Shown one piece after another: positions 14,640-23,209 of a stretch of DNA of 64,000 nucleotides. The notes beneath the pieces were generated by a model. It did not search any database. It saw only the letters and a program-made list of their open reading frames with translations, and had not been told where the DNA came from. Numbering within the stretch: the stretch's first letter is position 1; every line of letters begins with the position of its first letter. Location of the stretch: the sequence record NC_007623.1; one strand, written 5' to 3'. The position numbers were made by a program, and so were the translations under genes.

Positions 14640-16082
14640 TTAAGGGGTAAAAACAAGATGGGTGTTCAATTGACCCACCCGCACGGTGGTCGTTTGAGCG
14701 ACCCCTTTCTTCAACACAATCACGACCCGGAGTTTCAAGGTCTTAGGTGCGCTGGCCAATTCAAGGATTTGGGTATCGAAGATTCCCGAGAGATCCCCTT
14801 GACGCAGAGGGTAATTCAGTTCAGTGTTCTGACCCGAGCGCACAGTTTGGACTTGATCGTTCTGGTAGGTTACTTCCAGTTCCAACCCTACTTGCAAGAC
14901 TGCTTCCGCATCGGTTTGAATCGCCCAACGACCCTGAGCTACCAATTTCATCCCTACGGTCAGGTTTGTAATAGGGAGATCCTGTTCCATTCCCAGGGTC
15001 GGTTGATCACCGGTAGGCGTGCCCGTAAAGGACATTACCTGGTATTCACCCCCCGAAGGGTTGGTTTCCTTGGTAATAGCGACGGTCAAACCGATCAGTC
15101 GATTACCCCCAATACCGGTATTCGAGGCGATCTCAACCGTGGTAATGGTAGCACCTCCCGAATCCCCAGCACTACCATCATTACCGATCAACAAAGGGTT
15201 GGGGTTAATGCTCCCGAAGAAGTGGGCGGTCTCCGGCGGTGTCGTGCTGAACGGGATGTAACTGGTTGGCAAGGTAATGGTATTCTTGAACAGCTTGCTC
15301 ACCGCAGTGGCGACATGGTTACCGATGATCTCGGCTCCTTTGGGGCTTGGGTGTACACCGTCCCCCAGCATGCCCGCCAGCGGCTTATTGACATTACCCG
15401 GCTCTACCATGTCATCCCAGGGGTTAACCACGATAACACCCCGTTTAGGCAGCTCAGAGAGCATCCACAGGTGCACTTGGTAATGAATAGCCAATTGTTC
15501 ATCACTGAGCCCAATAGCGGCTTGTTCTACCGGGGTTTCAGCGATCACAATGACGGTTTTGCCATTGGCCAGCAATGTGGCGTAAATCTCGGAGAGGTTA
15601 TTGATCGTTTCATTGAACGTCTGGTTACGCAGACGGTCATTCCCCGAACCCAAATGGATAATGACATCGAACTTATCCAAGGAAGCCAGGAGTTGGGGAA
15701 GACGTTGGGCTTGTTGGGAGGTAGTATTCCCATCGACACCGGCGTTCATGGCATCCGGGAAGGCTACGGCTCCCTCGGTCTTCGCACTGGTCCAGAAGGC
15801 CAGACCAACGTTACCTTTCACGCACTGGTAAGCCCGGCTATCACCGTATACCACGATATTGCGGTTAAACGGCAACCGGTCATTACTTACCGCATTGACT
15901 TTGGTGGTCAGGGTATTCACTTCTTCTTTCAAATAACGGGTACGAGCGTCCAGCACACGTGCTTGCTTGTTCGCATTGCCGGTGCCTTCTTCGGTGGCTT
16001 CAACCTTGTCATCCGGCATCAGAGCCAGCAAAGGTTCAACCCATCCCGGTTGTTCATTAATCACTACGGGATTGTCAGCCAT
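14640..16082 (-). CDS. tail spike/fibre with SGNH/GDSL esterase domain
   Basis: Same N-terminal anchor as the fibre; SGNH blocks YGDS, NAGVDG, GSGND, DGVHP all present. Confidence 0.85.
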   Translation of the reverse strand: MADNPVVINEQPGWVEPLLALMPDDKVEATEEGTGNANKQARVLDARTRYLKEEVNTLTTKVNAVSNDRLPFNRNIVVYGDSRAYQCVKGNVGLAFWTSAKTEGAVAFPDAMNAGVDGNTTSQQAQRLPQLLASLDKFDVIIHLGSGNDRLRNQTFNETINNLSEIYATLLANGKTVIVIAETPVEQAAIGLSDEQLAIHYQVHLWMLSELPKRGVIVVNPWDDMVEPGNVNKPLAGMLGDGVHPSPKGAEIIGNHVATAVSKLFKNTITLPTSYIPFSTTPPETAHFFGSINPNPLLIGNDGSAGDSGGATITTVEIASNTGIGGNRLIGLTVAITKETNPSGGEYQVMSFTGTPTGDQPTLGMEQDLPITNLTVGMKLVAQGRWAIQTDAEAVLQVGLELEVTYQNDQVQTVRSGQNTELNYPLRQGDLSGIFDTQILELASAPKTLKLRVVIVLKKGVAQTTTVRVGQLNTHLVFTP

Positions 16083-17916: not shown

Positions 17917-18324
17917 ATGAGTAATGTAATGCACGTTAGCACCATCGCCGGTCGTACCGCCCTGACGGTGATCACACCCGACGACCTGCCGGTTACCAAC
18001 TGGATGGAAAATGTGCTTGCTGCACAGATCCAGAAAGTGGTTGACGAAGGTAAGGGTTGGCCCAACGACGCCGAGTTCAAGGTGGAGGTTACCTACCACA
18101 CTTGGCCACAGGGTTGGGACCGGGAAGTGTACACGCACTTCTTTACCAACCGCGCCGAGCTGGACTCCTACATCAAGGACCAGCACGAGTGGGCCCGTTG
18201 TGAGGACAACATGGTGAAGATCAAGATCTACAACTGGGACCTCGGTCCGAACTTCATGGAAACTCGTGAGTTCGGTGGTCCTGAGTTGTGGAACAGCCCT
18301 CTGAGCCGTCCTTACTTGACGTAA
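17917..18324 (+). CDS. early hypothetical protein (135 aa)
   Basis: AGGAG RBS; C/G-ending codons. Confidence 0.85.
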   Translation: MSNVMHVSTIAGRTALTVITPDDLPVTNWMENVLAAQIQKVVDEGKGWPNDAEFKVEVTYHTWPQGWDREVYTHFFTNRAELDSYIKDQHEWARCEDNMVKIKIYNWDLGPNFMETREFGGPELWNSPLSRPYLT

Positions 18325-18332
18325 GGCTAGCG

Positions 18333-18377
18333 CTACCTCCCTGCCAGTGGCAGGGAGGTAGTACTCCTTTTATTTTT
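18333..18377 (+). terminator. intrinsic terminator
   Basis: 13-bp stem CTACCTCCCTGCC-agt-GGCAGGGAGGTAG followed by a T-rich tract. Confidence 0.85.
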
Positions 18378-18424
18378 TGCTTCATTTCCATTTTTATAGT
18401 TCACTCAACACAACGAGCAAAGTA

Positions 18425-18565
18425 ATGCCTGACACTAACAACGGTCCTGTGGAAATAAAGATGGAACGTGTGCAGTTCAAAAGAATAAAAGTAAGGGGTC
18501 TTCGTAAATTCTGGTTACTCATCAAACGCTTACTGAGTAAGGACACCGATTATAAGAACACTTGA
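18425..18565 (+). CDS. small basic peptide (46 aa)
   Basis: In-frame ATG 18425 in track ORF; weak RBS. Confidence 0.4.
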   Translation: MPDTNNGPVEIKMERVQFKRIKVRGLRKFWLLIKRLLSKDTDYKNT

Positions 18566-18617
18566 CGAACGCATGGCTAAGTCAATGGAACTAAGGGTAA
18601 TTAACTTCTAGTTGTAA

Positions 18618-18640
18618 TCAGGTCTATATTACCTTTGTGT
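18618..18640 (+). promoter_or_regulatory. phage early promoter
   Basis: tcaggtcTATATTACctttgtgt. Confidence 0.75.
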
Positions 18641-18700
18641 ATATTAAGGCGTGGTTGCCTTCCTATTTTTAAGACCGAATAAACACAAAGGATGTTATCT

Positions 18701-19048
18701 ATGAGTCAAGTCAAGAAAGCGATGAAAGGTGTTCTGAAAGGTAACAGTCGAACGGCCGATAAGTTTGTATTATGGATGCCAGTTGAGCTACGCGATAAGG
18801 TTAGCGAACGCGCAACGGCCAATGGGCGGAGTATGAATGCTGAATTTATCATGCTCATACAGGCTGCGATAGCCAGTGGGAACACAGGTGGAACCCAAAT
18901 AAGGACTATTCCATCGGTAGGTGACCCTGTTCGGGTTGAAGGGCTCCCAGGTGTGGTGACTGAATTGATACCGACACCGACTGGATTAAAGATCCGGGCA
19001 AAAACCTGTGAGGGAGAGGATATTTATTCGTTATGGGAGATTGTTTGA
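18701..19048 (+). CDS. Arc-family ribbon-helix-helix DNA-binding protein, AmrZ-like
   Basis: [34 protein letters not shown] versus P. aeruginosa AmrZ [34 protein letters not shown] (recalled); AAGGA RBS 8 nt before ATG 18701. Confidence 0.88.
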   Translation: [115 protein letters not shown]

Positions 19049-19049
19049 T

Positions 19050-19250
19050 ATGACTCGTTTCGAGAACTCGGATAAGGAAAAGAAACCCAGTGTTCCTTTG
19101 CAGAACAAAATCGGGTTTGCGGGGATAGGGCCCGACGATGAGCCCATGTCGTGGACACTCACCCTCCCCGGTGAAAACTCGGTGGGTTACGCAGAACCCT
19201 TTCGACCTGAGAAAGAAGACCTGATCCCCCAACCGGTCTCTTTCGATTAA
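19050..19250 (+). CDS. hypothetical protein (66 aa)
   Basis: ATG 1 nt after the upstream stop; GGAGA RBS. Confidence 0.6.
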   Translation: MTRFENSDKEKKPSVPLQNKIGFAGIGPDDEPMSWTLTLPGENSVGYAEPFRPEKEDLIPQPVSFD

Positions 19251-19261
19251 AAGCGTTGTAT

Positions 19262-19295
19262 ACCCCTACCCAGCCCTTTTCGGCTGGGTAGGGGT
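19262..19295. terminator. bidirectional terminator
   Basis: 14-bp stem ACCCCTACCCAGCC/GGCTGGGTAGGGGT between convergent genes. Confidence 0.8.
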
Positions 19296-19313: not shown

Positions 19314-20369
19314 TTACTTCACTTTGGTAACACACGACGATCTGACCAGTTCGGTGATGTCGATCATCGTAGCTGCCACCGTCACGGTGATCTTATCCAC
19401 CTCGACCACCCCACTCAGCAATCCTTTCAGCTCATCGAGTCGCTTATTGAGGGCTTCCTTATCGGTGTCGTTACTGTAGTGGTTAATTTGACCTTCCACC
19501 TTGGCAATCTTGCTCTCCAGTGCTTGGCGGGTCTCAAAGATGCTCACCCAACTGTTGGACATTGCTTCTTCACAACGACCGATTTTGCGGACAAATTCCT
19601 TAGCGGAATTGAGGTCTTTGATCGTTGTCACTTTAGGCAGGCCGATAAGTCCATTCACGTATTGCTGGATACCAATAACCATGCCGTCCGCTACGCCAGA
19701 ATCCTCACCTTCATCCGCCAGTTTCTGGTACTTCGCTTTACGCTCATTCAAACGACCCACCGCGGCTTCCAGTTTGGCGACCTGGCTGCGCATTAGACTG
19801 CTGTGAATGATTCTGGAATCAAAGACTTCCTTGATCACCTTTTTAACCTGTTCAGGTTGGTGTTCCACCGGGAGGGCTTTAATGTCGTCAAGTTTCTTAA
19901 CTACGGTCTCCTTAGCACTTTGGTCCTCGATCTTGTTGGCGATCTGAGTGGCTTCTTGGAGAACAGGACCCACGTTGGTCGTTGTCACCTTAGGACTCGC
20001 TACGGCGTCTATCGCCTTTTCAGCGGCCTTAGCGGATTCATCTACCTTATCCAGTTTGTCTTTAACGTTCTTCTTGAAGAGACCCCCGAAGATCGACTTG
20101 AACAGGTTCTTGATGTATTCCCAGGCTTTCTTAATCCCTTCGCCAATCGACGACAGGAACCCCTCATTCCCCGCCACTTCATTACGGGTCAGGTAACCCG
20201 CGGTATGGAGAACGGACTGAAGGTAACGCTGATTCGCAGTCAGGTCCATTCCTTCAGTTCCCATGACCGTATCCGAAAGACCATCGAGTACTTGCTCAAT
20301 ATGTTCCATTTCTGGAACACCGTCCATCAGTTCGTCTTCGTATTCAACCGTGTTGGCTTGCTGTTCCAT
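19314..20369 (-). CDS. phiKZ-type internal head (ejection) protein with acidic propeptide
   Basis: Acidic N-terminus, G-T-E|G and G-N-E|G sites, then amphipathic GFLSSIGEGIKKAWEYIKNLFKSIFG helix. Confidence 0.7.
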   Translation of the reverse strand: MEQQANTVEYEDELMDGVPEMEHIEQVLDGLSDTVMGTEGMDLTANQRYLQSVLHTAGYLTRNEVAGNEGFLSSIGEGIKKAWEYIKNLFKSIFGGLFKKNVKDKLDKVDESAKAAEKAIDAVASPKVTTTNVGPVLQEATQIANKIEDQSAKETVVKKLDDIKALPVEHQPEQVKKVIKEVFDSRIIHSSLMRSQVAKLEAAVGRLNERKAKYQKLADEGEDSGVADGMVIGIQQYVNGLIGLPKVTTIKDLNSAKEFVRKIGRCEEAMSNSWVSIFETRQALESKIAKVEGQINHYSNDTDKEALNKRLDELKGLLSGVVEVDKITVTVAATMIDITELVRSSCVTKVK

Positions 20370-20386: not shown

Positions 20387-23209
20387 TTAAAAGAGTGAGA
20401 GAACACTCCGGGAGGTATACAAGGAATGGGTTTCAGGTTCATCCCCCATATCAAACATTTCTTGGCCGGTGATATTACCCAACAACTCATGGCCCTGTTC
20501 TTTACTCATAAGAATGTCCACTTGTTCCTTAGACCATTCCATGATGTTAATACTGCGGGTCATAATGTTGAGTTTATCCCCGGTGTCCATATCCAAGAGT
20601 TTAAAGTAACAGGGAGCATCCTGACCGGTACGCCAGGTACGGGCTTGGACCTGTTTCACTTCATACTCTCGGAAAGGGGCATTCAACAGAATGGTCAGGT
20701 TCGCCATAATCAAGGGATACCCTTCCTTCAGGGAATCAAAGATCGCAATCAACGCACGGAGAGTGGGGTCTTTCTCAAAGCGTTTGATATTGGTGTCTCG
20801 TTCGTTGCTGTTTTCACCGTATACTGTCACATTCGGATACCCGACCTTCGTGAGGTATTCCTCGCAGAGTTTAAGGGCATCCACGTAGGAGGTAAAGATC
20901 AGAGTCTTCTTCTCCACGTTATCGATGAGCTCAGGGAGTCCTGCGTGCGCAATGGTGTCTTTAATAGCGTTAATACGGGCTCGTCCTAAAACGTTCCCTA
21001 AGGCCTCTCCACGCAGTTTTAGACCCAAGTACTTAACCGCGGACTTAATGTTCCTGAAATCCTTCAGGGTGGTCCCTTTAAGGCCCTTCTCGATGTCTTC
21101 TTCCACCAGCTTACAGAACTGACTGTCTTGGTTATCCGTAAAACTGTTGTACCCCCGGGTTCTGAACCGGTGAACAATCTGTTTGTACTTCACCAGATTC
21201 TCAACCGCTTTAGCATTCCCCTGGATAGACAATTCATACGACGTCATAACATCGTTGTAGAATTCCAGGAAGCTCGGCATATGCTTCGTATAGAACGCAA
21301 TCCGTTCTCCAATGTAAATCTGCATTTGGAGGCGAATAGCATCCAAGGTGTATTGATCCGAATTCGGGATCTTCACCTTAACCAGTTCCATAGGAGGAGG
21401 ATCGCCCAATCCCACCAGTTCAGGAATGGTGAACTTCATACGTCCAATACGTCTACTCAGCAAATCCATTAACGAGGGACGGTTACGTCCATAGGACGCC
21501 ATAAAGAACTCCCGAGCCTTCTTATCGAAGTAGGGATCGATCATACAGGTCGTTGGGAAGATTTCACTCCCCTGAGCCTTTAGCGGCGTCCCTGACATCG
21601 GAAGGTGATGCCCGAACAGTTCCATGTCGCACCATTCGATCAACTTCCGTGTACGGGCTGCTTTAGGGTCATTGAAGTTCTGGGATTCATCCAGAATCAT
21701 CTTCAAAGCGCCTTTATGCTTCTTACTCAGCGCAATGAGGAAGTTCTCCAAGTATTTCCCCATACCACTGGTCATGTAATCGTAATGGACGATGTAGAAG
21801 TCATACCCTTCTTCTAAGACCTTACCGCTGATACTGGTCCAGATACGGGGTGGAACCTTAAAGTGCTGGAGGGGTTGTTCTACCCAGACTTTATCCACAA
21901 TGTTCATAGGGCAAAAGACAACCGTCGGAGCCGTATTGATCAATTGAGACCACGCCAAGGACGTAAAGGTATTGTGGGTCACGATGTAGTCATCCACCAC
22001 ATACAGCTTCTCGTCATTATCCAAGGCAATGCAGCAAGTCTCTTGATTCTCCACTTTCTCCCAGTACGCCAGCTTCAGTTGCAGGTCTTCATACTGGGAG
22101 AAGTTATACATTCCTTGAATACGGGGATTGTCTCCAATTAACCCAGTCATCATCTTGCCGACGTCTCGGTGCTTAAAGTCAACCTTATACAAACCGTTAA
22201 CCAACACTGGCTCCGTAGCTGTTCCTCCAATGGACCACATCAACCGACGGAAGTTCTCCATCCCAATCCGGTTCTCGTGATACGCGGATAAGACGGATTC
22301 ACTGATTAAACACCCCACGTGTTCAATCACCGATGTGACTATATTAAAGCGATCCCGATACGGGAGCTCCAATACGTTGTCCCCTATTACAACGTCGGTA
22401 TTGACCAGCTCCCTTGCAGCGACTTCAGAAGACGTATCGCAATGGGGGTTGCATCCATTGATCTCACCCACTAAGGGGAAGTACACATCCTCTTTACGGG
22501 CTTTATGGAGTACTTCCAACGTGGTTAAGATTTCATCGACCCCATTCACCGTGGTTTTCCACAAATGATACGGATGAGAGTCAGCCGTTCTACCGTCTTC
22601 GAAATAGAAGCGATAAACTTCCGTGATCCCCTGGGGGTAAATACTCTCCACACACGCGGTATCACCCCCGGGGGTCACTACGATATCCTTGACCTTTAGG
22701 TCACCCAAGGCTTTCCACCCATTTGGGACTTTAACCCGGGTTGAGAGAGGCATGGCTTTTCCTGAACCCGGTTTAGCATCCAACAACATCCCTTTCAAGT
22801 GATAACTGTTCACAATGATAGGGTATTGCTGAAGAAAGTCCAACTGCTGAGGAAAGGGAACTGTGTTGAACTGATTCAGTTTCTTAAGATCAAAAGGTTT
22901 ACCTCCCGGATTAACCGTATCTTTAATCCAGGTCTCGGTTTCAATGAGTTCCTTCAATTCACTCAACGCTCGTCTGCGGGTACGGAGGTTCCGTATTTTG
23001 AGGAGTTCCCCCACAATGTGGTGCAATTCTACCAGGAAGAAGTTATGCACCTTAATGGTGTCCCAGGATTCGCGTCGAATCTGATGTTTCGTTAAGAGAG
23101 AAGTGCTGTAGAACTTCTCAATGTCTTTGGCTAAATCGTAATAGGACACACCCGTAATGTGTACGTAGTCTCCCGTTTGTTTGATCTTAACTGAAAACAG
23201 TCCTAACAT
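20387..23209 (-). CDS. superfamily 2 (SNF2-like) helicase, intein-containing precursor
   Basis: Walker A KPGSGK|T, Walker B ILDESQ, motif III SGTP, motif VI QARTWRTGQ. Confidence 0.92.
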   Translation of the reverse strand: MLGLFSVKIKQTGDYVHITGVSYYDLAKDIEKFYSTSLLTKHQIRRESWDTIKVHNFFLVELHHIVGELLKIRNLRTRRRALSELKELIETETWIKDTVNPGGKPFDLKKLNQFNTVPFPQQLDFLQQYPIIVNSYHLKGMLLDAKPGSGKAMPLSTRVKVPNGWKALGDLKVKDIVVTPGGDTACVESIYPQGITEVYRFYFEDGRTADSHPYHLWKTTVNGVDEILTTLEVLHKARKEDVYFPLVGEINGCNPHCDTSSEVAARELVNTDVVIGDNVLELPYRDRFNIVTSVIEHVGCLISESVLSAYHENRIGMENFRRLMWSIGGTATEPVLVNGLYKVDFKHRDVGKMMTGLIGDNPRIQGMYNFSQYEDLQLKLAYWEKVENQETCCIALDNDEKLYVVDDYIVTHNTFTSLAWSQLINTAPTVVFCPMNIVDKVWVEQPLQHFKVPPRIWTSISGKVLEEGYDFYIVHYDYMTSGMGKYLENFLIALSKKHKGALKMILDESQNFNDPKAARTRKLIEWCDMELFGHHLPMSGTPLKAQGSEIFPTTCMIDPYFDKKAREFFMASYGRNRPSLMDLLSRRIGRMKFTIPELVGLGDPPPMELVKVKIPNSDQYTLDAIRLQMQIYIGERIAFYTKHMPSFLEFYNDVMTSYELSIQGNAKAVENLVKYKQIVHRFRTRGYNSFTDNQDSQFCKLVEEDIEKGLKGTTLKDFRNIKSAVKYLGLKLRGEALGNVLGRARINAIKDTIAHAGLPELIDNVEKKTLIFTSYVDALKLCEEYLTKVGYPNVTVYGENSNERDTNIKRFEKDPTLRALIAIFDSLKEGYPLIMANLTILLNAPFREYEVKQVQARTWRTGQDAPCYFKLLDMDTGDKLNIMTRSINIMEWSKEQVDILMSKEQGHELLGNITGQEMFDMGDEPETHSLYTSRSVLSLF
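21971..22756 (-). mobile_element. class 3 intein (262 aa) in the helicase Walker A
   Basis: Ala1 start (AMPL), block B HPYHLW, block F TCCIALD, end VTHN followed by Thr+1. Confidence 0.93.

Follow-up and report, generated by a model that had tools for sequence, protein, structure and literature searches.

The window analysed here is a stretch of 64,000 nucleotides that forms the final 64 kb of the 211,215-bp genome of Pseudomonas phage EL (AJ697969 / NC_007623), and the gene in question is PPEV_gp163 (gp163). On balance, the best explanation of this gene is that it encodes an accessory transcription regulator of a nucleus-forming jumbo phage, in which a DNA-binding domain of ribbon-helix-helix (RHH) type, belonging to the AmrZ clade, is followed by a family-specific beta domain. 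The EL protein has a tryptophan, Trp25, at the position of the guanine-reading arginine of AmrZ. Sequence comparison identifies this residue as a natural allele within the genus Elvirus and not as a trait of the family, and altered or weakened specificity of the EL allele is most likely, ahead of an inert protein.

The 3.1-kb stretch around gp163 was 100% identical to phage EL, and positions in the window were obtained by subtracting 147215 from those of the record. The gene is an uninterrupted open reading frame (ORF) that corresponds to the annotated coding sequence of the phage. Its start was assigned to the ATG at 18701 and not to the in-frame ATG at 18692, since a Shine-Dalgarno sequence, AAGGA, lies 8 nt 5' of the former. 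EL belongs to Elvirus and, according to one related record, to the Chimalliviridae, the nucleus-forming jumbo phages. A tblastn search (E <= 1e-3) found no homologue of gp163 in the phiKZ-type relatives, and the gene is therefore regarded as accessory.

The AmrZ-type reading head and the C-terminal domain

The Pfam Arc model (PF03869) matched residues 16-56 of gp163 with 52.1 bits (cut-off 20.4) and an E-value of 5.7e-14, and PHROGs of Arc-like regulators matched the protein at about 1e-13. In a phmmer comparison of gp163 with the PDB, Mnt (1MNT, 2.3e-6) came first and AmrZ (3QOQ, 3.3e-6) second, followed by Arc. A profile of the gp163 family discriminated more clearly, with 6.7e-28 for AmrZ 3QOQ and only about 1e-8 for Arc and Mnt (Mnt 1.3e-8), and on this profile, though not on gp163 alone, the RHH domain falls in the AmrZ clade. 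The alignment with 3QOQ, in which the chain index equals the AmrZ number plus 3 as judged by the position of Lys18, Val20 and Arg22, was in register and free of gaps, with 18 of 43 residues identical and the hydrophobic positions conserved. These results bear out the original prediction, made on the window before any database was searched, that gp163 is an AmrZ-like RHH protein.

The same alignment paired Ser16, Arg17, Lys21, Val23, Arg31 and Asn46 of gp163 with Ser13, Arg14, Lys18, Val20, Arg28 and Asn43 of AmrZ. Trp25 fell opposite AmrZ Arg22, the position that is also Arg13 of Arc, Arg10 of Mnt and Arg15 of the phage regulator Gp53 considered below. As originally predicted, AmrZ residues Arg14, Lys18 and Val20 are thus kept and Arg22 is replaced by a tryptophan, encoded by TGG. 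The AmrZ reading head Lys18-Val20-Arg22 is consequently incomplete in gp163, which retains Lys21 and Val23 and has Trp25 for the arginine, and the protein departs from Arc-like proteins in lacking Arg at the third outward-facing position of the ribbon. The Arg-Ser-x-Asn turn that opens the second helix is present, with Arg43, Ser44, Met45 and Asn46 of gp163 standing in columns that are 90-100% conserved. AlphaFold2, run on an alignment of 50 sequences, predicted helices 30-41 and 45-58 at a predicted local distance difference test score (pLDDT) of 85-94. The strand at 21-27 was taken from a single-sequence AlphaFold model (pLDDT 50), which was not used for the C-terminal domain.

The AmrZ-DNA structure attributes the base-specific contacts to Lys18, Val20 and Arg22 (PMC3325190), in agreement with the mode of recognition given in the original prediction. 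Arg22 reads guanine through a bidentate hydrogen bond; in the R22A mutant the dissociation constant (Kd) is 44-fold higher and the phenotype null-like (PMC3325190). Since tryptophan cannot make this bidentate contact, the site read by the EL allele must change or weaken.

Downstream of the RHH helices, the AlphaFold2 model has a low-confidence linker (residues 59-67) and then a segment, residues 68-115, predicted at a pLDDT of about 90 with strands at 76-79, 82-92, 95-102 and 105-110. This four-strand, all-beta prediction is compatible with a small barrel of the KOW/SH3/Tudor/CarD type. The more definite label of KOW/SH3-like, which had been attached to the segment at the outset, could not be established. 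Pfam returned no match for the segment, either with residues 68-115 alone (E <= 0.1) or with the whole protein (E <= 1), and no KOW signal emerged. The PDB gave no sequence match to the C-terminal domain when queried with the segment itself, with the segment of a relative or with a nine-sequence profile, and the segment returned nothing significant from PHROGs. CarD_TRCF_RID was matched weakly by two of 50 family members (best E 0.026).

The other half of that claim, that the segment stands in place of the AmrZ oligomerisation tail and is unlike it, held up. A chromosomal survey with one genome per species gave 582 confirmed stretches with the N-terminal motif of the family, of which 80 loci were kept, almost all of them in Pseudomonas, Halopseudomonas and Thiopseudomonas. 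AmrZ-type proteins of 104-110 aa were encoded by 64 of the 80, and one of these was confirmed against 3QOQ at 1.2e-24. The C-terminal profile of the gp163 family matched none of the 64. Profile-profile comparison (hhalign) of the gp163 family with the chromosomal AmrZ-type proteins gave a probability of 100% for the RHH part (E 2e-41) and 0.04% for the tails. Judged by these profiles, the tail of gp163 is unrelated to the tetramerisation tail of AmrZ.

Relatives of gp163 were collected from 1.84 billion representative proteins, in which 183 matches were found at E <= 1e-3 and a subsequent profile search found 2722; many of the latter lie on contigs of 220-280 kb. Distant relatives align with gp163 over the C-terminal 50-60 residues also, and the columns of Pro71 and Gly74 are at least 90% conserved. 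Of the 259 relatives that were collected, 62 were matched by the C-terminal profile at E < 1e-3 (gp163 itself at 7e-18). A region-restricted search with one relative, P0070, returned only P0070 itself. Within the 62 members that bear the domain, the reading head is nearly invariant, with Lys in 62, Val in 61 and Arg in 61; the EL protein provides the single Trp and also the single Glu at position 29, where 58 of the 62 have Gly. The genes of the family sit among small co-directional ORFs of no known family, as in the early regions of phages.

With a chromosomal AmrZ orthologue as tblastn query, 72 Pseudomonas phage records were retrieved, among them PaBG, phi3, JBD68, Noxifer and the phages SM1, PA_L9 and BHU-1 of ~93-94 kb. 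In this search the Elvirus genes scored about 1e-6 when of the Arg type and 1e-4 when of the Trp type. Gp115 of SM1, a protein of 126 aa, has Arg15, Arg21, Met35 and Asn36, which are exactly the positions targeted by mutation in Gp53 of PhiPA1019, likewise a 126-aa protein, from a phage of 94 kb. It carries the C-terminal domain of the gp163 type (profile E 1.2e-6; hhalign probability 71%, E 3.7e-5). PaBG gp184 (138 aa) probably carries the same domain, to judge from a profile E-value of 0.02 and an hhalign E-value of 0.002 at a probability of 14%, and phi3 gp09, at 81 aa, is without it. The architecture of RHH plus beta domain is thus a trait of a large phage family that includes the Gp53 type. 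The fusion to a C-terminal segment noted in the original prediction is not special to EL, the arrangement being common to Gp53-type phage regulators, which bind host promoters through the very arginine that EL lacks.

Gp53 is produced early and binds the ftsZ, fleQ, pslA and amrZ promoters of the host (Li et al. 2026, PMC13650114), and its R15A mutant loses both binding and phenotype (PMC13650114). The AmrZ homologues of PaBG, phi3 and JBD68 are active within the regulatory network of the host (Borges et al., bioRxiv 10.1101/673095), and the DNA-contacting residues are perfectly conserved in the six mobile AmrZ homologues aligned in that study (bioRxiv 10.1101/673095). The EL allele is an exception to this statement, because it has Trp at the Arg22 position.

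The Trp25/Glu29 allele within Elvirus

Residues at column 25 were counted in 292 aligned RHH domains from the 259 collected relatives. Arg occupied the column in 284, followed by Trp, His and Gln (two each) and Asn and Tyr (one each). The doubt raised with the original prediction, that Trp might be common at this position in ordinary Arc proteins, is removed by these counts. The eight distinct Elvirus phages of the phage collection are evenly divided. The codon is TGG (Trp) in EL, IR-QUMS-PaBa1, GXNNE2 and GXNNA8, and CGG (Arg) in HHBS8_1, HHBS47_1, MIZ-Pa99 and phiRU. Two clusters at 90% identity contained 15 distinct proteins, of which 11 were Arg25/Gly29, three were Trp25/Glu29 and one was a fragment without the region. 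Diversity is greater in the Arg/Gly class, the Trp/Glu sequences being nearly monomorphic.

The nearest relative outside Elvirus, P0003 (39% identity), has Arg at position 25. It is considered a syntenic orthologue of gp163 because the adjoining helicase gene is homologous to EL gp166 (5e-82). Since the Arg/Gly class is the more diverse and this orthologue has Arg, the Trp/Glu haplotype is concluded to be derived and young. Trp25 is, on these comparisons, a natural allele within Elvirus and not a family trait. The notion that Trp is a design feature of an AmrZ mimic does not survive, given Arg in four sister Elviruses, in P0003 and in 61 of the 62 domain-bearing family members.

The ratio of nonsynonymous to synonymous substitution rates (dN/dS) of gp163 against the Arg-type alleles was 0.30-0.37 for the whole gene, with values of 0.44-0.54 for the RHH half and 0.12-0.18 for the C-terminal half. 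The gene is thus under purifying selection and is not decaying. Positive selection was considered and rejected, as dN/dS was below 1 in both domains, the numbers being too small for tests of single sites. A pseudogene or a sequencing error as the source of the Trp codon was likewise rejected, the same TGG being present in four genomes and in further contigs.

Over the 292 domains, residues other than Arg at position 25 go together with Glu29 (5 of 8, against 15 of 284; Fisher p = 4e-5, uncorrected for phylogeny). The sole other Trp-bearing relative in this set, P0088, has Glu at position 29 too. P0088 (L098 1475-1702) is a protein of 75 aa whose gene is divergent to an arc-ant pair, a Mnt-like placement in an immunity region. 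By analogy with Mnt, whose position it occupies, P0088 suggests that Trp can occur in a working repressor. An altered but working head is favoured for the EL allele because Trp25 is linked to Glu29, because P0088 carries the same pair and because non-Arg25 and Glu29 are associated across the 292 domains.

Transcription unit and neighbouring genes

The features of the gp163 region are collected in Table 1.

Table 1. Features of the gp163 region, in window coordinates
Feature	Position	Strand	Remarks
Intrinsic terminator of the gp161-gp162 unit, left edge of the gp163 unit	18332..18362	+	14-bp stem, 9 G-C pairs, 3-nt loop, T-run
Phage-type promoter-like motif	18616..18632	+	Upstream flank plus TATATTAC core 18625-18632
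Structured 5' leader	18632..18692	+	Repeat search; inverted repeat 18632-18645 / 18678-18691, inner hairpin 18646-18661 (GGC-N6-GCC)
gp163 coding sequence, probable AmrZ-clade RHH regulator with C-terminal beta domain	18701..19048	+	115 aa plus stop
RHH DNA-binding domain, residues 16-58	18746..18874	+	Pfam, 3QOQ/1MNT alignments, AlphaFold2; Ser16-Arg17 loop, strand 21-27, helices 30-41 and 45-58
Codon 25, TGG (Trp)	18773..18775	+	AmrZ Arg22 position; CGG (Arg) in four sister phages
Codon 29, GAG (Glu)	18785..18787	+	Perfectly linked to Trp25 in Elvirus; Gly in all Arg-type alleles
Predicted C-terminal all-beta domain, residues 68-115, family-specific	18902..19045	+	AlphaFold2; without Pfam model
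gp164	19050..19250	+	66 aa; start codon one base past gp163 stop
Intrinsic terminator closing the gp163-gp164 unit	19262..19295	+	14-bp stem, 10 G-C pairs, 6-nt loop

The TATATTAC core of the promoter-like motif sits 69 nt 5' of the gp163 start and is the published phiKZ promoter core (PMC7058600, table 2). Four copies of it occur in the window (1892, 17336, 18625 and 59316), all on the (+) strand and with similar flanks, and where a gene follows (the chaperonin gene gp146, gp161 and gp163) they stand 51-76 nt before its start. The count of the promoter 10-mer was only weakly above that in shuffled sequence (5 against 2.5), and the motif before gp163 was invariant in five Elvirus lineages. In phiKZ and 201phi2-1, an AT-rich motif class of this kind marks early genes that the virion RNA polymerase transcribes (PMC11512511). 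The early promoter that had been proposed for gp163 therefore stands as a phiKZ-type core upstream of the gene, with its earliness in EL read from the motif, and expression of gp163 early in infection is a reasonable inference from the sequence. Three promoters annotated in the record (4485, 16793 and 33848) resemble a related variant of the TATATTAC motif.

The inverted repeat of the leader is 14 nt long and 93% complementary and overlaps the Shine-Dalgarno AAGGA at 18688-18692. The leader RNA folds at -18.4 kcal/mol (z = -2.1), and a GC hairpin followed by a T-run was noted at 18646-18669. No Rfam family came near any gathering score in the gp163 leader or the intergenic region, and a riboswitch or other known RNA was rejected on this ground and on the fold z of only -2.1. 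The 331 bp upstream of gp163 were 99.4-100% identical in all Elviruses compared. No comparable or consistent palindrome was found upstream of 11 other genes of the family, and GGC-N5/6-GCC sites showed no enrichment in the window, where 5 and 7 were counted as compared with about 14 in shuffled sequence. Since the upstream leader does not differ between Trp-type and Arg-type phages, no operator change accompanies the change in the reading head. An autoregulatory operator at the leader palindrome was accordingly set aside and kept only as a weak rival, there being no enrichment, no difference between Trp and Arg types and no counterpart at other family genes.

The gene that follows gp163, gp164, is probably co-transcribed and translationally coupled with it. 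No Pfam or PHROG family was found for gp164, which is not conserved beside the relatives of gp163, the downstream neighbours being different in nine family loci. Upstream, window positions 17917-18700 (gp162, the intergenic region and a small ORF) were 99.4-100% identical in EL, HHBS8_1, MIZ-Pa99 and phiRU. Gp162 was 100% identical in three lineages, as against a divergence of 4.6-7.5% in gp163. GXNNE2 has exactly the gp163 allele of EL but another gene and another terminator hairpin at the place of gp162. On these comparisons the locus looks like a recombination mosaic with a boundary at the start of gp163. The small ORF, of 46 aa (18425-18565, + strand), is annotated in several sister records and not in the EL RefSeq record, and belongs to no family; its DNA is identical in all lineages, so that coding cannot be judged.

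Convergent to the gp163-gp164 unit is gp165 (19314-20369, - strand), a protein of 351 aa that belongs to PHROG 21850 and weakly matches phiKZ-like internal head proteins (E 0.0075). Next along the window is gp166 (20387-23209, - strand), an SNF2-type helicase named 'DarB-like antirestriction' in RefSeq, in which Pfam recognises only Helicase_C. Compared with the homologue in the phage that encodes P0003, gp166 has an in-frame insertion of ~260 residues just past Walker A, possibly an intein or homing element. Gp157 (14640-16082, - strand), a GDSL/SGNH lipase (E 6.9e-14), adjoins the tail-fibre gene gp156. The original prediction had coupled this SGNH spike with gp163 in a two-level attack on the exopolysaccharide barrier; gp157 is encoded on the other strand, 2.6 kb away, and the link amounts to presence in the same genome.

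Proposed action and comparison with known systems

Two chains of gp163 would form an RHH dimer, whose beta ribbon would enter the major groove of DNA. The C-terminal domain may join dimers or hold a partner, and so do what the tails of AmrZ and Mnt, to which it is unrelated, do in building tetramers. With its Lys-Val-Arg head of the AmrZ type, the gp163 family would bind operators of AmrZ type in the Pseudomonas host at an early stage of infection. These steps are drawn from established RHH biology together with Gp53, AmrZ and the PaBG homologue. In the EL allele, with Trp for the guanine-reading Arg and Glu for the neighbouring Gly29, the reading of DNA by the ribbon must be changed.

It could further be envisaged that Trp25/Glu29 constitutes an alternative reading head and not a defect, so that two natural alleles of a mimic of a host regulator read different DNA sites, an idea that we consider quite unlikely. 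Were it true, T-rich, methyl-bearing sites might be preferred by the Trp form, or its action might go through the conserved beta domain and involve no base-specific contacts. Each of the two allele classes would then rewire its own set of host genes, for instance those for defence or surface polysaccharide, and host diversity would maintain both.

Several points weigh against the favoured explanation, that gp163 is a host-directed regulator with an altered but working head. Replication of EL takes place within a protein shell and the phage, like its relatives, has its own RNA polymerases; a need to tune host promoters is not obvious. Replacement of the arginine by alanine loses binding in both AmrZ (PMC3325190) and Gp53 (PMC13650114), and the Trp allele could be a hypomorph. 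The diversity of the Trp/Glu lineage is too low for relaxed selection to be tested there, and the source of P0088 is one contig at 3x coverage. The role suggested for the C-terminal domain, whether in joining dimers or in binding a partner, is drawn from analogy. The timing of expression is taken from the promoter-like motif, and a literature search returned no EL transcript data and no experiments on gp163.

A hypomorph arisen by drift, in which the Trp allele has mostly lost sequence-specific binding, the gene is dispensable where these phages were isolated and only the Arg type functions, appears somewhat improbable to us but is a serious rival. It would agree with the 44-fold rise in Kd and null-like phenotype of AmrZ R22A, with the loss of binding in Gp53 R15A and with Arg in 284 of the 292 domains, and a young, nearly monomorphic lineage in an accessory gene would also suit it. 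Set against these are an ORF that four genomes from three countries, as well as further contigs, carry intact and in identical form, the perfect linkage of Trp25 to Glu29 with the same pair in P0088, an independent repressor, and the overall dN/dS of 0.3. A regulator internal to the phage is unlikely. On this account gp163 would act on EL DNA and not on the host chromosome, through autoregulation at the leader palindrome or the timing of phage genes. Arc and Mnt, the next-best structural relatives, do repress phage operators, an almost invariant leader holds the GGC-N6-GCC palindrome between promoter motif and start codon, and the amrZ1 operator of AmrZ has GGC/GCC half-sites (PMC3325190). As mentioned above, however, the leader is the same in Trp-type and Arg-type phages, with no operator change to match, the GGC-N5/6-GCC sites fall below the shuffled counts and the 11 other family genes have no consistent palindrome. 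EL DNA is moreover enclosed in the phage nucleus, which puts in question the access of a small cytoplasmic protein.

It is very improbable that gp163 acts as a dominant-negative partner, forming mixed RHH dimers or oligomers with host AmrZ in which Trp poisons the reading of DNA. The only points in favour of such mixing are the similarity of the RHH cores (18 of 43 aligned residues identical to 3QOQ, hydrophobic positions conserved) and the position of Trp on the face of the ribbon that is turned towards DNA. Gp163 has nothing that corresponds to the tetramerising tail of AmrZ, however, and the characterised relatives work by their own DNA binding. Because Arg is retained in the family and in half of the Elviruses, the family cannot act by poisoning. 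Finally, we consider it extremely unlikely that gp163 is an RHH antitoxin paired with gp164 or a ParG-like centromere binder. Weak Pfam matches to RHH antitoxins (FitA-like 1.9e-4; HicB and ParD-like in relatives) and the translational coupling of gp164 would favour the former, and the partition label of PHROGs 795 and 2685 the latter. Gp164 has no family, however, and is not conserved next to the relatives, and gp163, at 115 aa, has no match to a P-loop or ATPase domain and no annotated ParA gene nearby. Both readings were rejected for want of a conserved toxin partner, an ATPase and a nearby ParA. The product name of gp163 is 'partition protein ATPase' in RefSeq and 'transcriptional regulator' in two sister records. 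The former name also stands on the RHH proteins phi3 gp09, an F10 gene and a Mnt homologue (L009 1495-1740 is among the affected loci). Because plain RHH proteins such as the Mnt homologue and the phi3 AmrZ homologue carry it, the label is taken to be a mis-annotation propagated from these two PHROGs, and the present analysis corrects it for gp163.

It was already known that phage-borne copies of AmrZ act in the Pseudomonas regulatory network and lower CRISPR-Cas expression, and that Gp53, a related protein from a phage, switches off promoters for cell division and motility. The present analysis adds that gp163 is part of the same family, which is much larger than these examples and is common among large phages of Pseudomonas, that the family shares a C-terminal beta domain described in no database, and that a matched natural pair of alleles, Arg/Gly and Trp/Glu, exists at the base-reading residue. 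A comparison of these alleles would show how far one or two residues can change the reading head of an RHH protein, and whether steering host promoters is still a need for a phage whose own DNA is hidden in a protein shell.

Among characterised systems, Mnt and Arc of P22 share the RHH fold with gp163. Mnt is formally the best PDB match and also has a C-terminal oligomerisation module after the RHH domain, and Glu29 is the Arc/Mnt state. Unlike either, gp163 has no ant or immunity-region context and belongs to a virulent phage; both P22 proteins have Arg at position 25, and the tails are unrelated. The homologues of PaBG, phi3 and JBD68 resemble gp163 as Pseudomonas phage RHH proteins retrieved with AmrZ as query. 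The likeness to Gp53 was judged through the co-numbered SM1 gp115 (same length, with R15, R21, M35 and N36) and not from the PhiPA1019 sequence itself. On that basis, both are genes of virulent P. aeruginosa phages in which an AmrZ-like RHH domain precedes the same small beta domain, both are set among small ORFs of early type, and both have the same Ser/Arg, Lys, Val and Arg-Ser-Met-Asn positions. In contrast, the reading-head residue that is Arg15 in Gp53 is Trp in gp163, and identity to the SM1-type proteins is low, these lying outside the tblastn matches of gp163 itself at 1e-3. With AmrZ (PA3385, 3QOQ), gp163 shares the Ser-Arg N-terminal loop, Lys18, Val20, Arg28 and Asn43, the last of which positions residue 22. 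It differs from AmrZ in the replacement of Arg22 by Trp and of Gly26 by Glu and in the loop-supporting Tyr11 and Glu25, which are not kept; it has an unrelated beta domain in place of the tetramerisation tail, and its gene is carried by a phage, behind a phage-type promoter.

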